Virus record (IMG/VR): IMGVR_UViG_3300027668_000008
Span: 242,715 to 306,714 of that record
Direction: 5' to 3' (one strand)
Length of the DNA stretch: 64,000 nt
Part shown: in pieces, positions 1-6,294 of the stretch
How positions within the stretch are numbered: the stretch's first letter is position 1
Layout: the number at the start of each line of letters is the position of its first letter
Notes under the pieces: generated by a model
What the model was told of the DNA's origin: nothing
The model's input: the letters and a program-made list of their open reading frames with translations, nothing else
Databases searched by the model: none
Position numbers and translations under genes: made by a program

Positions 1-310
1 AAATGCCTTCATGTGAGTTCGCCACAGCCCGACTATTGGAAGTAAGTATTTTATCGCAACTCTATGGGTTCTAGTCTTTCCCACACTTACACTGATCCTA
101 CTTTCGTAGTCTATTTCCTCGTTCCGATTGAAATAGTTTTTAAGAGTTATATGCGTTTGTCATACGTTAGCAATCGTACTATACTAACCGGTGAGCCCAA
201 TTTGTTTGATGGCTTCCACACTCTGGTGTGTTGATCGGTATGTTGCGTGTGTCCCTTTACGGGTACTTTTTCCACAGTGGATAGTTAAACTGGCCCACTA
301 ACCTTATGTG
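1..310 (-). ncRNA. Candidate large structured non-coding RNA, truncated at window edge; family not identified
   Basis: No ORF in the track, richer in GC than its flanks. About 10 stems on the minus strand, including CTAC-GAAA-GTAG (98-109), CTATTTC/GAAATAG (111-117/130-136), 42-49/83-90 and 166-172/182-188 (G-U pairs only on the minus strand), plus two crossing pairings. Confidence 0.55.
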
Positions 311-346
311 CTAATTGATTTGCCATAATGATTGCTGATTTTGTGC

Positions 347-856
347 CTATGCACACAGAGTCTTAACTCTGTCTGCGTTTCTTTGAAAGAATTCTTCGAA
401 GCCTGTGATATGCCATGTTTTGTGTTTTGGGGAATTGTATGTGAATTGCCGTGATGTGATGAGTTGATGTGCGCCTGGGGTTGCTATAAATTTGCCTTTG
501 TTATTAAACTTCATTATTAAAATATTGAAGTCGCCATCATCTGCCGCGTCCATTAATTGGTCCAGCCAGTCCTCCAGCATACGAACCTTGTCGTGTGTGA
601 GCAGTTGATGAAATGGAAAGTCTTTATACGATTTACATTCCGCATTAAATTTTGGAAACGATTGTCCAGGAATAATATCTCCTTTAAATCCACGTATTTG
701 ACCTTCGTGTAATACTTCTTTACGAACAGTATTTTGTCCGCCTACATAAGCGCCTGAGCCCGGAGCTCTAATAAAAGATTCGTTGTATAAATCGGATAAG
801 AAACGTGCAACGTCTCTTTCCCAATTACTTCCTTTTGCTTTTTGCTTGTTTGGCAT
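347..856 (-). CDS. Holliday junction resolvase, Hjc-type PD-(D/E)XK nuclease
   Basis: KAKGSNWERDVA, RAPGSGA, GDI and ECK motifs; lies in the recombination gene block. Confidence 0.8.
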   Translation of the reverse strand: MPNKQKAKGSNWERDVARFLSDLYNESFIRAPGSGAYVGGQNTVRKEVLHEGQIRGFKGDIIPGQSFPKFNAECKSYKDFPFHQLLTHDKVRMLEDWLDQLMDAADDGDFNILIMKFNNKGKFIATPGAHQLITSRQFTYNSPKHKTWHITGFEEFFQRNADRVKTLCA

Positions 857-1070
857 TCTTCTTCCTATGTATGTTTAATAGTAACACCTTTTGGTGGTAC
901 TCGTCAATCTTTTTTTCTGCATAGAAAGGAAATAATGTTGGAACAAAACCGTGTATGATGCTAATGATACCTGTAAGTATCAAATCCAATCCTGCCACGA
1001 CGGCAAACTTGGTATGCTCATAATAGGTCTTTCCGGCTTCTTTTAGATGTGCCTTAATTGCCCTTTTCAT
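825..1070 (-). CDS. Small membrane-associated protein (DUF6356-like)
   Basis: HL..AG.TY.EH..FA...G......IIHG..P.LF pattern with a hydrophobic core. Confidence 0.55.
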   Translation of the reverse strand: MKRAIKAHLKEAGKTYYEHTKFAVVAGLDLILTGIISIIHGFVPTLFPFYAEKKIDEYHQKVLLLNIHRKKNAKQAKSKRK

Positions 1071-2412
1071 AGATTCCCTTTAACTTATTGATGTTCGGCT
1101 TTCCTAGAACGTTAAGCTCGATGTGTGTAACTAATTTATCCACCGATATACCGTTGTCAGCCAACTTCTGAACTAACTGTTTTACATTCACGTCTTTATG
1201 TTGCATAACCACTACAACGTGTGTCTGAGATATGCTAAACACACAACAGTATCCTTCTAACCAATTTGGTACAAGTTGTTGTGGATTGATTAGTTGGTCG
1301 TCAATTCTTATTAAGTCGCTATTGCGTTTTTCAAAATAAAATGTATCTGCGTCAGCACTTACAATATCTTGAGTAACAAATATATCTATAGATTCATCAT
1401 TAATGCTTTTGCACATATGACTACTACCTTCGATTGTAAGTATCTCATTTTCGTTAATATCGTAACTGCCTGTGTTGTCGACTATACTTCCCATTTCTTT
1501 ACTATTATACAAGTCTAAGTTGTGCTTGTCAACGACTTTATGTATTAAAGGTGGTAAACATTCAGTAAGTCCATATATTACTGCAACTTTTTCTACGCCT
1601 TGATTCTTAACCAACCTTCTAATAAACGAATTGTCTATTACACTACCGCCAGTTAAAACCCATTTAACATAATCAAAGTTACGCAAGTGTATTCCTTGCT
1701 TTGCATATGATTGAAAATGCACCGGAAAAATTAACATCATATCCGGTTTGTACTTGTCTAAATCTTCTGCGTTATAAGGATTGTCTAGTCTAGGTAGTAC
1801 AATCCGTTTACTTGAAAACAATGCAGGAAAAAAGTAAACACTGCTCACACCTAAGTGAACAATATTATGGAAAAACCAACTTGTGTTTGCTTCTTTCCAA
1901 TAAAGTCTTATACTGTCGTCTGTTGCACTCTCTACACTTTTATGAGTGTGTTGTATGCACTTAGGTACTCCAGTACTTCCACTTGTTAATGCTTCTATTA
2001 AAACTTCCGAATGATCGATGATATAAGTTTCAACACCTTCGAACATATCTTCAGTAACACTTATGTCGTCTAAATCTAAGTGAGTACAATTATCAGCATG
2101 AATAGTACATGGGTGTATACCACGTGTTATCATTGCTTTAATATTTCTACTAGATGTGTATTCATTTGTTATTTCGTGTTCTCCACTTATAACAATAATA
2201 AGTCCATAATCAATAGCCGCAAAAACACAGGCAAGGTGATGAAAGTCTTCTTGCATTGCAAGTCCAACTCTATCGCCCTTGACTAGGTTATTGTTCAAGA
2301 ACAGTTGTTGGTACCCAGAAGCAAATCGAGATAAACTCTCTTTAGTCAACTGGGTACCGTTAATTAGATCAACTATTTCAAAATTATTAGATAACTTTGT
2401 AATAGATATCAC
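1054..2412 (-). CDS. ANL-superfamily adenylate-forming enzyme (acyl-CoA synthetase/AMP-binding-like)
   Basis: P-loop TSGSTGVPK, YGLTE, TQD, KRNSDLIRIDDQLINP and C-terminal GKP; GTG start. Confidence 0.8.
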   Translation of the reverse strand: MISITKLSNNFEIVDLINGTQLTKESLSRFASGYQQLFLNNNLVKGDRVGLAMQEDFHHLACVFAAIDYGLIIVISGEHEITNEYTSSRNIKAMITRGIHPCTIHADNCTHLDLDDISVTEDMFEGVETYIIDHSEVLIEALTSGSTGVPKCIQHTHKSVESATDDSIRLYWKEANTSWFFHNIVHLGVSSVYFFPALFSSKRIVLPRLDNPYNAEDLDKYKPDMMLIFPVHFQSYAKQGIHLRNFDYVKWVLTGGSVIDNSFIRRLVKNQGVEKVAVIYGLTECLPPLIHKVVDKHNLDLYNSKEMGSIVDNTGSYDINENEILTIEGSSHMCKSINDESIDIFVTQDIVSADADTFYFEKRNSDLIRIDDQLINPQQLVPNWLEGYCCVFSISQTHVVVVMQHKDVNVKQLVQKLADNGISVDKLVTHIELNVLGKPNINKLKGIYEKGN

Positions 2413-5449: not shown

Positions 5450-6294
5450 CCTTTTTTGGCGGCTTTCACTTTAGTGTTTTCATTAAACTTATCAACACGT
5501 TTTTGTTCTGCTACTGTGTCATTGGCATTTTGTCTAGTAAAACTAGGTGCTAAGTCATTCATTTCCAATATATCATCTCTAATGTTTTGGTTACGTTTTT
5601 CAATGTTTAGTACTCTTGTAAAACTATTTGTTATTGCCGCAGTATAATATGCAAACGGATTGTCTGATTTACTTTCGTCAAACTGTAGTCCTATTTGTGC
5701 TAACTGTAATAATGCTTGTCCACGCATTTCATCTACATATGTGTAACCACGCCAGTTGTATCTGTGACTGTAACGTTCACATAACATCATATACATATGT
5801 GCTAACTTGTTTGTTACTTTACCACCTGATAAACTAAAGTTGCCGTTTTCCATTCCGCCTTCCCAATGAGACTTGCCACAAATAACTAATTCGCCAGTTG
5901 CATTAAATCGCCAATGTTGGAACGGAGGAAAATTACATTTAGTGTGATGATCTGCAACTGTCTTAGGATTCTTTTTACGTTCACTGTCTGTTGGAACGTG
6001 TTCAAAAGTCATAACTCTAAAAATCAGTTCTGTTTTTTCGAATGATTTAGGATCAACATGGAAGTCTGCCATCTTTTTTCCTTTAATAGTATTATTCTTA
6101 TATCCGTTTTTTGCTATCCTATCTGCTCTATTTTGCCGAGCTTGAAGAATTGTTGCTTTTTTAATTTCCTTTTCCGAATGTAAAATAATATCGAAAATCT
6201 TTGCGTCATCATCTAAGAACGACCCAAAAGTGCTTTTAGATGTATGTATTTCTGCTAATAGGTCTCTATTGTTGAGGTAATTTCGTACTGCCAT
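5446..6294 (-). CDS. gp55: Late transcription sigma factor, T4 gp55-like
   Basis: NYLNNRDLL N-terminus; YVDEMRGQALLQL...FDESKSDNPFAYYT...NSF; T4-like position next to gp47/gp46. Confidence 0.85.
   Translation of the reverse strand: MAVRNYLNNRDLLAEIHTSKSTFGSFLDDDAKIFDIILHSEKEIKKATILQARQNRADRIAKNGYKNNTIKGKKMADFHVDPKSFEKTELIFRVMTFEHVPTDSERKKNPKTVADHHTKCNFPPFQHWRFNATGELVICGKSHWEGGMENGNFSLSGGKVTNKLAHMYMMLCERYSHRYNWRGYTYVDEMRGQALLQLAQIGLQFDESKSDNPFAYYTAAITNSFTRVLNIEKRNQNIRDDILEMNDLAPSFTRQNANDTVAEQKRVDKFNENTKVKAAKKG

Follow-up and report, generated by a model that had tools for sequence, protein, structure and literature searches.

A large pseudoknotted non-coding RNA downstream of a phage resolvase gene and its probable kinship with the Polynucleobacter-1 motif

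A conserved structured RNA downstream of the resolvase gene

The present analysis concerns a 64,000-nt stretch of DNA (the window), which comprises bases 242,715 to 306,714 of IMG/VR record IMGVR_UViG_3300027668_000008, a 306,714-bp sequence from an uncultured marine giant phage that is estimated to be 87% complete. At the start of this window, downstream of a gene for a PD-(D/E)XK “resolvase”, the minus strand encodes a non-coding RNA of about 370 nt, and it is close to certain that this is a real, independently folding structured RNA. The explanation that we regard as the best, and hold with moderate confidence, is that of a free-folding RNA linked by family to the Rfam motif Polynucleobacter-1 (RF01718), in which two short motifs, m1 and m2, would serve as an “address.”

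Coordinates beyond the window are given on the fetched flank L002, in which a position equals the window position plus 6000. The RNA extends from L002 6323 down to 5954 on the minus strand, so that its first nucleotide corresponds to window position 323. The window thus holds nt 1-323 of the molecule (window 1-323, minus strand; a 424-bit match to our R1 covariance model), and the remaining 47 nt, comprising hairpin H9 (L002 5976-5999) and motif m2 (L002 5954-5966), precede the window start. The stretch initially flagged lies within a 601-nt gap that separates two convergent genes, and R1 finds a single match in the 306-kb genome. An earlier reading of the DNA, referred to here as the original prediction, had proposed at this place a large, structured and pseudoknotted non-coding RNA that runs past the window edge; both proposals hold, the conserved core ending 47 nt beyond the window start.

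The evidence for structure comes from relatives. The resolvase protein, used as a query, retrieved 80 IMG/VR loci, the ten closest of which share DNA homology downstream of the resolvase gene. A plain MAFFT alignment already reveals compensatory changes, such as GUACC/GGGAC versus CUUAU/AUAAG versus CUCGG/CCGAG, and RNAalifold applied to seven sequences yields 75 pairs, 21 of them compensatory. R1 together with a pattern scan for group A, the window's own type, provided 73 full-length relatives, 58 of them distinct, among the matches listed. In the alignment of these 58 sequences, 88.6% of paired cells are complementary, compared with 75.7% after column shuffling (none of 500 shuffles equalled the observed value), and sliding the partners by 1-3 columns reduces pairing to 34-41%. 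Changes on both sides are present in 42 of the 75 pairs, with 534 compensatory cells versus 165. Fitting this alignment to the model biases it in favour of structure; against this bias as the explanation speak both the slid controls and the raw MAFFT alignment. The covariation among homologues that the original prediction had proposed as a check is therefore strong.

Folding of the single sequence contributes less: the minus strand reaches z = -1.81 relative to shuffled controls and the plus strand +0.15, a modest gain in an experiment that the original prediction had also put forward, so the case for an RNA rests on covariation. The strand is indicated by the nature of the substitutions. In H9 and helix 3 these are solely of the A-U/G-U and C-G/U-G type, which would be mismatches on the other strand; the earlier assignment of the RNA to the minus strand, in the direction of the operon, is correct for the same reason. 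The region was also rightly described as free of open reading frames (ORFs): none of at least 60 aa is present, and relatives are separated by indels of 1, 2, 5 and 27 nt. It is not coding.

Secondary structure and pseudoknots

The RNA contains at least 13 helices, two supported pseudoknots and many invariant unpaired bases; all positions below are window positions read on the minus strand. Hairpin H1 (276-299; stem 276-281/294-299, helix 4), with a conserved GCCAG... loop, has compensatory changes in five of its six pairs. It is followed by UGGAA (270-274), the 5' strand of a long-range helix (helix 5) that closes the central domain by pairing with UUCCA at 37-41; this helix is 92.9% paired, with two compensatory pairs. 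Within it lie hairpin H3 (251-266, GUACC...GGGAC; helix 6), compensatory in all five pairs, and a sub-domain (181-241) closed by helix 7 (236-241/181-186), which is 96% paired and compensatory in all six pairs. In this phage the sub-domain encloses two variable hairpins, one of which, at 217-230, covaries. The stem of the helix-8 hairpin (175-179/162-166) is 94% paired, four of its five pairs being compensatory.

A further domain (55-155) is closed by helix 9 (152-155/55-58) and helix 10 (143-147/59-63), the latter paired in 100% of cases and compensatory in five of five pairs. It contains hairpin 11 (130-136/111-117), which displays the conserved loop AAUCGGAACGAG and compensatory changes in five of seven pairs, hairpin 12 (98-109), with a GAAA loop and three of four pairs compensatory, and hairpin 13 (80-82/66-68).

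Two long-distance pairings are superimposed on these helices. In pseudoknot 1 (PK1), the 5' leader UUAGCA (309-314) pairs with UGCUAA (167-172) in the loop of the helix-8 hairpin; a Python script applied to alignment A6, which provided the pseudoknot pair counts, recorded covariation at two positions (CG in 20 and UA in 14 sequences; AU in 21 and GC in 16). In pseudoknot 2 (PK2), the inner strand GUAAGU (85-90) pairs with the outer strand ACUUAC (42-47) across helices 9 and 10. Its 6 bp are formed in 56-58 of the 58 sequences, with compensatory A-U versus G-C changes at two positions. RNAalifold had instead drawn a closing helix between the 5' end and m2, which is weakly paired (65-72%); we set it aside in favour of the better supported pairing between leader and helix-8 loop.

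Eight of the eleven pairings in the original prediction coincide with covarying helices. The stem 276-280/295-299 is H1; 253-255/261-263 is part of H3, whose full extent is 251-255/262-266; and 217-221/226-230 shows the compensatory change CACAC/GUGUG versus CACGG/CCGUG. The stem 111-117/130-136 and the GAAA tetraloop hairpin at 98-109 are hairpins 11 and 12, 65-68/80-83 matches hairpin 13, and 42-49/83-90 is PK2, which is real and shows a few compensatory changes; because it crosses helices 9 and 10, the RNA is truly pseudoknotted. Of the two crossing pairings originally suggested, 58-63/143-148 is helix 10, while GACUA/UAGUC (31-35/72-76) retains just two or three pairs among relatives. The stem 166-172/182-188 conflicts with the covarying helices 236-241/181-186 and 175-179/162-166, and 12-15/23-26 finds no support in the alignment. 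The long-range helix 270-274/37-41 and PK1 had not been foreseen.

Relationship to Polynucleobacter-1

No Rfam 15 family matches the RNA, in the window or in L002, at the gathering threshold or at E-values up to 1-10. This includes the known large RNAs, ribozymes and riboswitches (RNase P, tmRNA, group I and II introns, GOLLD, ROOL, HEARO, OLE and raiA); ARAGORN detects no tRNA or tmRNA in L002, and eight divergent group-A loci have no Rfam match at E up to 1. The original prediction had called the RNA unassignable, and searching the extended locus led to no family either; yet it is in all likelihood distantly related to an orphan motif. Polynucleobacter-1 (Rfam RF01718), described in 2010 by Weinberg et al., was listed for fresh water and estuary (PMC2864571). 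It was placed “downstream of” a conserved phage-like gene (the GOS11034 family), with possible homology to cyanophages; its 3' half was not always detected, and it was seen in no purified phage (PMC2864571 supplement).

The connection emerged from the 3' end of the RNA. An iterated hidden Markov model (HMM) of the 3' 80 nt finds this module in 46 of the 80 loci retrieved with the resolvase, each time on the strand of that gene and ending about 300-390 nt past the stop codon or past an inserted ORF. The sequences split into three groups, designated A (the window type), B and C. Three of eight loci scanned with Rfam at E up to 1, all from group C (L024, L066 and L053), match RF01718 with scores of 101-118 bits, the gathering score being 37. 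These matches span just the first ~140 nt of the conserved region; the Rfam model has a length of 141 nt and corresponds to the 5' third. Full-length group-C RNAs measure 350-400 nt and their order of elements parallels that of the window RNA.

For the 3' domain we built a covariance model, R3, on 47 sequences from groups B and C and none from group A. Its top match in the whole 306-kb genome lies at L002 5952-6045 on the minus strand (21.7 bits). All 13 group-A loci that were searched likewise have an R3 match where it was expected, with E-values from 2.5e-4 to 0.06, and over the 1.24 Mb of the 80 resolvase loci all 46 matches at E<=0.05, L006-L012 among them, lie on the resolvase strand shortly downstream of the gene. 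The full-length group-C model, R2, recovers group B at 1e-19 to 1e-7, L011 at 8.9e-4 and L012 at 0.09. Moreover, the window RNA and the RF01718 matches follow orthologues of one and the same PD-(D/E)XK gene, 54-58% identical.

Three results weigh against the family link. R2 gives the window RNA itself 5.9 bits (E 0.18, filters off), albeit at the right place and on the right strand; Rfam RF01718 does not detect it; and its 5' domain is without the second RF01718 hairpin, CCUGGacc...ggucaCAGG, which in that motif precedes GGGAUGGAA. A sequence HMM from group C only likewise misses the window RNA. Given that direct detection is weak, the link is transitive, from the window to L011 and from there to groups B and C, and it rests on the 3' domain and synteny. 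On the basis of 3' domain, synteny, size and motif layout, we consider it highly probable that the window RNA shares ancestry with the Polynucleobacter-1-bearing RNAs; the failed RF01718 test and the missing hairpin lead us to file it as a variant outside RF01718 as currently defined. It would thus represent the marine, group-A form of a large RNA family of uncultured large T4-like phages, a sister form of which has Polynucleobacter-1 as its 5' third.

Element by element, the two forms agree in part. Both come immediately after a conserved nuclease gene of the phage, and the full RNAs around RF01718 matches, at about 370 nt, end in the same m1-hairpin-m2 3' domain as the window RNA. The 5' order is similar: a first hairpin, whose loop is of the GGCCA type, is followed by a GGAA junction, then by a small hairpin and by a closed sub-domain with inner hairpins. 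The first RF01718 hairpin has a GGCCAAUAUCU-type loop, to which the H1 loop of the window RNA, GCCAGUUUAACUAU, is similar at its start only, although it covaries and stands in the same relative place; the bases immediately after H1 are CUGUGGAAAAA. Covariation is also present in H3 and in the helix-7 sub-domain, inner hairpins included, but for these no homology to the Rfam columns can be demonstrated at the sequence level. The central domains differ, group A having a hairpin with the loop GGAACGAG and the GUAAGU/ACUUAC pseudoknot, and groups B and C the GGUACCGGACAACCGCC H-type pseudoknot. The habitats differ as well, the window form being marine and Polynucleobacter-1 freshwater. In a first covariance-model alignment of short group-B matches, a GGUAC hairpin was mapped to H1, which we judged wrong since the families are colinear and the short matches are 3' domains only.

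Groups B and C have pseudoknots of their own. Their hairpin GAGG-UACCGGACAACCG-CCUC forms an H-type pseudoknot in which the loop CAACCG pairs with an upstream CCGUUG (e.g., L023 4750-4800 and L040 5650-5740), with the compensatory extensions GUUGCG/CGCAAC and GUUGAC/GUCAAC. In the long hairpin that precedes it, the loop UUAGCGU pairs with a downstream ACGCUAA (CG in 45 and UA in 11 sequences; GC in 38 and AU in 15). Both pairings lie outside the Rfam model.

A full-text literature search for the name Polynucleobacter-1 returned just the 2010 description, and to our knowledge neither the true size of this motif nor its pseudoknots, its range of phage hosts or its paired motifs have been described before. 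The 141-nt Rfam motif of 2010 would be one corner of a family of multi-pseudoknotted RNAs of about 370 nt, two of whose three subfamilies Rfam misses.

Distribution

The family is common in viral contigs from marine and fresh waters: the group-A pattern occurs in at least ~120 IMG/VR contigs, as does the central-hairpin pattern of groups B and C, and the sequencing runs that contain the window sequence are marine. Among the phages in GenBank (50,697 records), the window locus and the group-A and group-C representatives used as queries have no megablast or blastn match. In bacterial genomes, all 120 pattern matches are attributable to chance, none being accompanied by the 3' module. RF01718 was not found in three named genomes plus 151 of one bacterial family, which is weak evidence, as the named controls were silent too.

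Motifs m1 and m2

The most unusual property of the family resides in its 3' domain. In all groups this begins with GUGAC, a 6-8-nt spacer and A(C)UC plus a core, together forming m1 in the H8 loop, and continues with the G+C-rich terminal hairpin H9, GUGAC(C/U), a spacer and AUCU plus a core, which constitutes m2. In the window RNA, m1 (AACUCACAUGAAG, positions 7-19, minus strand) has the core ACAUGA and a location that is a hairpin loop in the better-sampled subfamilies; m2 (AAUCUACAUGAUG, L002 5954-5966, minus strand, outside the window) carries the same core.

This agreement is general. The 6-7-nt cores of m1 and m2 are identical in 58 of 58 group-A sequences and in 95 of 101 distinct B and C sequences, across at least ten alleles: AGAUGA, GGAUGA, AGAUAA, GGAUAA, ACAUGA (that of the window), GUCGGA, GAAUGA, AGCUGA, ACAGAG and AAAGAA. 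The allele often differs between close relatives. Mutual information between matching positions of the two motifs amounts to 0.82-0.97 bit, compared with at most 0.3 bit for any other column. The three bases that precede the core are fixed and unlike between the motifs (CUC versus UCU), which makes simple gene conversion unlikely. A motif pair that covaries by identity, and not by complementarity, is unusual.

We found no partner complementary to m1 and m2 and covarying with them above chance in the RNA, within 1.5 kb on either side or in the whole genome. Several other accounts of the motifs were discarded. Template-jumping reverse transcription is disfavoured by the lack of an RVT_1 gene in this 87% complete genome; the core is not a genome-wide motif; palindromic self-pairing of m2 would, by inspection, be open to the AG and GG alleles only and not to ACAUGA and others; and in place of the GGA of CsrA-type sites about half of the sequences have AGA.

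Expression

The original prediction had named metatranscriptome coverage as a check, and six marine metatranscriptome libraries do contain pieces of the locus. Contigs from the RNA libraries span the resolvase gene into the RNA (X15 record 2, L002 6179-7100; X18 record 9, L002 6228-6397; X16 record 9, L002 6225-6405). The two libraries that reach furthest (X16 record 5 and X20 record 13) stop at L002 6002-6007, before the terminal hairpin at 5976-5999. Across L002 5284-5993 there is no RNA-library coverage, over the whole stretch in X16 and X20 and from 5700 in X15, X17, X18 and X19. This silent stretch, which includes the spacer, the downstream hairpins, a small ORF and the end of a baseplate gene, is covered in one contig by DNA runs, and its silence argues against DNA carry-over. 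The pattern suggests that transcription continues from the resolvase gene into the RNA and ceases at the terminal hairpin or shortly past it. These data lend support and fall short of proof: the Logan contigs report presence only, are directionless, have low depths (2-25) and cannot define RNA ends or abundance. Promoter and terminator scans returned nothing above shuffled expectation at the ends of the RNA, and no promoter-like site between the resolvase stop codon and the RNA.

Sequence variation was also seen in these data. Record 2 of run X1 is a DNA contig about three times deeper than the main one, which shares L002 5956-5984 and 6179-6217 and has 241 different letters between them; it seems to represent a more abundant co-occurring strain in which the central domain has been replaced. 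An island at L002 6191-6231 is common to several runs, both RNA and DNA, in which its flanks are unlike.

Genomic context

The resolvase gene (window 347-856, minus strand) encodes a 169-aa protein that resembles T5 D14 and matches Pfam PF24608 at 81.5 bits. By tblastn, it has distant relatives in Salicola phage SCTP-2 and in PA5oct-like and Atu_ph07-like jumbo phages, and some of the matched proteins of PA5oct and SCTP-2 are annotated as resolvases. The RNA starts 23 nt past the resolvase stop codon here, and immediately past it in L006-L012. Facing it on the plus strand are a T4 gp26-like baseplate gene (PF12322) and a small conserved reading frame that ends at about L002 5745. The RNA gene marks the 3' end of a block of phage nuclease and recombination genes, convergent with genes of the baseplate hub. 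This fixed slot between recombination/nuclease genes and baseplate genes of large T4-like phages argues for a role in the core life cycle.

The small plus-strand frame (..WYMRG...TGLPFF; L002 ~5543-5745) always lies between the gp26-like gene and the RNA, and recurs in relatives (e.g., L174 1377-1595, minus strand). It has no Pfam match, and in this genome it is without a clean ATG-initiated version of at least 50 aa. On the other side of the resolvase, an AMP-binding (adenylate-forming) enzyme of 452 aa (window 1054-2412, minus strand; PF00501, 83 bits) is an unusual neighbour, placed amid recombination genes between the resolvase and candidate SbcC/SbcD-like genes. The latter are 589-aa and 337-aa ORFs further into the window that, by eye, look like a nuclease pair of the SbcC/SbcD (gp46/gp47) type.

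In groups B and C, a gene for a 141-aa SegE-like GIY-YIG endonuclease often lies directly upstream of the RNA (L174 499-927, PF19835 at 114 bits, and about 54 other loci of these groups). It has the appearance of a stand-alone homing endonuclease that has entered at the 5' border of the RNA. In other loci, unrelated ORFs of 213-406 aa intervene between resolvase and RNA, and this border seems to act as a hot spot for insertions.

Downstream DNA

The lowest-GC 200-nt stretch of the whole 306-kb genome (GC 0.21; 242,440-242,640, L002 ~5726-5925) abuts the 3' end of the RNA, between its core and a series of small hairpins. The cumulative GC skew reaches its lowest value at 248.5 kb (window ~5,800) and its highest at ~21 kb, both at switches of gene strand.

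The small hairpins are conserved downstream of the RNA in most members of the family (here L002 5803-5850, minus strand, 150 nt past the RNA; also L040, L023, L071 and others). The first, UCGCU..AGCGA, comes right after m2 and reads AUCGCUUCGCUC in this phage. The second has the conserved loop UGAGCGNNAGCGAA, here GAACGAUAGUGAA, with a compensatory change in its GC-GNNA-GC mini-stem, while the third consists of 7-8 bp followed by U's. None of them matches Rfam.

Possible functions

The identity of m1 and m2, as opposed to complementarity, points to a partner complementary to both. For this part we favour the template DNA strand of the gene that encodes the RNA itself, as no third co-evolving element is then needed. 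The ornate core would keep m1 exposed, and m1 and m2 would work by base pairing as an “address”: the m1 RNA would pair with the template DNA strand of its own gene under m2, and this pairing would tether the RNA to its locus or give rise to an R-loop immediately behind the terminal hairpin. We judge the chances for and against a nucleic-acid address of any kind to be evenly balanced. Pairing with the DNA of the own locus specifically is a tentative proposal and, taken alone, doubtful, and a target in trans bound at two sites is nearly as likely. In favour of the own-locus version are the position of the most AT-rich 200 nt of the genome at the 3' end of the RNA and the precedent of the T4 R-loop origins (PMC3016281). 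It is quite unlikely that the RNA acts as a self-addressing origin or primer RNA, in which m1 invades the template under m2 and a persistent R-loop marks a start of replication or recombination.

Several points speak against an address of this kind. An RNA:DNA match of 7 nt is short, a 370-nt ornate fold exceeds the needs of a simple R-loop primer, and the pairing idea leaves the difference between CUC and UCU unexplained. The AT-rich stretch is unconserved, with a mean GC of 0.33-0.37 over 150 nt in relatives against a background of 0.39-0.41, and their spacer is often just 10-40 nt long. We rejected the GC-skew minimum as an origin marker, as it is 6 kb away and tracks the switch of gene orientation.

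Among the rival explanations, a cis-acting element of the 3' untranslated region (UTR), which would protect the mRNA from 3' exonucleases or terminate or insulate transcription and have no function as a free RNA, is unlikely. It would fit with the constant position of the RNA, last in a transcription unit that converges on the small ORF and the gp26-like gene, with metatranscriptome contigs that are continuous with the resolvase and in the two furthest libraries end near the terminal hairpin, with the lack of a promoter-like site in between, and with the further small hairpins and U-tract downstream. However, a stabiliser or terminator would need far less than some 370 nt, 13 or more helices, two pseudoknots and many invariant unpaired bases, the RNA is retained despite ORFs, including the SegE-like homing endonuclease, inserted between it and the resolvase, and the identity of m1 and m2 would have no role. 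That the region is not an RNA at all, but a chance fold, a short conserved ORF or a feature of the DNA itself (for example a recombination or cruciform site between direct repeats), is an extremely improbable reading. The single-sequence z of only -1.81 would allow it, direct repeats around an inverted repeat could be a DNA feature, and the neighbouring genes encode nucleases. It is nevertheless largely refuted by covariation and RNA-library coverage: G-U covariation is strand-specific and compensatory changes extend across 13 helices, and the six RNA libraries contain the region while none covers the adjacent DNA wherever this was compared. A coding origin, moreover, is contradicted by the frame-breaking indels and the absence of longer ORFs.

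A primer RNA for a replication origin comparable to ColE1 RNA II, oriF and oriG, a special case of the own-locus pairing above, whose R-loop at m2 and the adjacent AT-rich DNA would prime leading-strand synthesis, is improbable. As with the tethering described above, pairing of m1 with the template under m2 would require two co-evolving elements only, the most AT-rich 200 nt of the genome lie directly downstream, and the locus is a strand switch beside recombination genes and the baseplate-hub cluster; the more active origins of T4 also lie near strand switches (PMC3016281). This is countered by the lack of conservation of the AT-rich spacer across the family, by the skew minimum, 6 kb off and explained by gene orientation, and by the R-loop origins of T4, which need no elaborate RNA fold (PMC3016281). 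We regard a ribozyme, the alternative raised by the original prediction, or a self-processing RNA, for instance one that cuts at the two identical motifs and frees the terminal hairpin as a small RNA, as very improbable. Size, pseudoknots and invariant single-stranded bases do resemble those of catalytic RNAs, and two identical motifs could be two identical cleavage sites. Yet no ribozyme or intron family of Rfam covers the RNA at E up to 10, ARAGORN reports neither tRNA nor tmRNA, no internal guide covaries with the motifs, and the aligned contigs, although a poor test, contain no joints or sharp molecule ends.

Should m1 and m2 prove to pair with the DNA of the RNA's own gene, a new mode of action of a phage RNA on the locus that encodes it would emerge. 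If the RNA is self-addressing, the co-evolution of two elements would offer a general, searchable signature of pairing between an RNA and its own gene, and would bear on how start sites are marked in a widespread clade of large T4-like phages.

Comparison with known systems

Like GOLLD, ROOL, OLE and raiA, the window RNA is large, multi-domain and pseudoknotted, with many invariant unpaired bases. It is phage-borne, as are some copies of GOLLD and ROOL, and it is known from comparative genomics alone. It is smaller than these two, matches none of the four in Rfam and has a fixed position after a nuclease gene. For the motif pair that covaries by identity, we know of no counterpart in GOLLD, ROOL, OLE or raiA. 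With the HEARO/IscB and TnpB omega RNAs it has in common a large structured RNA beside a small nuclease gene and a short, lineage-variable segment near the 3' end. In contrast to them, the adjacent gene varies within the family (PD-(D/E)XK resolvase, SegE-like GIY-YIG endonuclease or unrelated ORFs), the locus has no IscB, TnpB or HEARO match, and the variable core comprises 6-7 nt and is present twice.

The R-loop primers afford the remaining comparison. In ColE1 RNA II, an upstream RNA segment must contact the template DNA near the origin, and in T4 the gene uvsY borders the baseplate genes 25, 26 and 51. Both oriF, located in uvsY, and oriG of T4 are R-loop origins in which a promoter is combined with an AT-rich unwinding element; among the origins of T4, the more active ones are situated close to strand switches in transcription (PMC3016281). 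The window RNA differs from these systems in that the AT-rich element is unconserved in its family, whereas the origin RNAs of T4 are without an elaborate fold. It resembles them in that its transcript heads toward AT-rich DNA at a strand-switch region. Moreover, an RNA that pairs with downstream template DNA would be expected to contain, as here, an upstream segment that repeats a downstream one.

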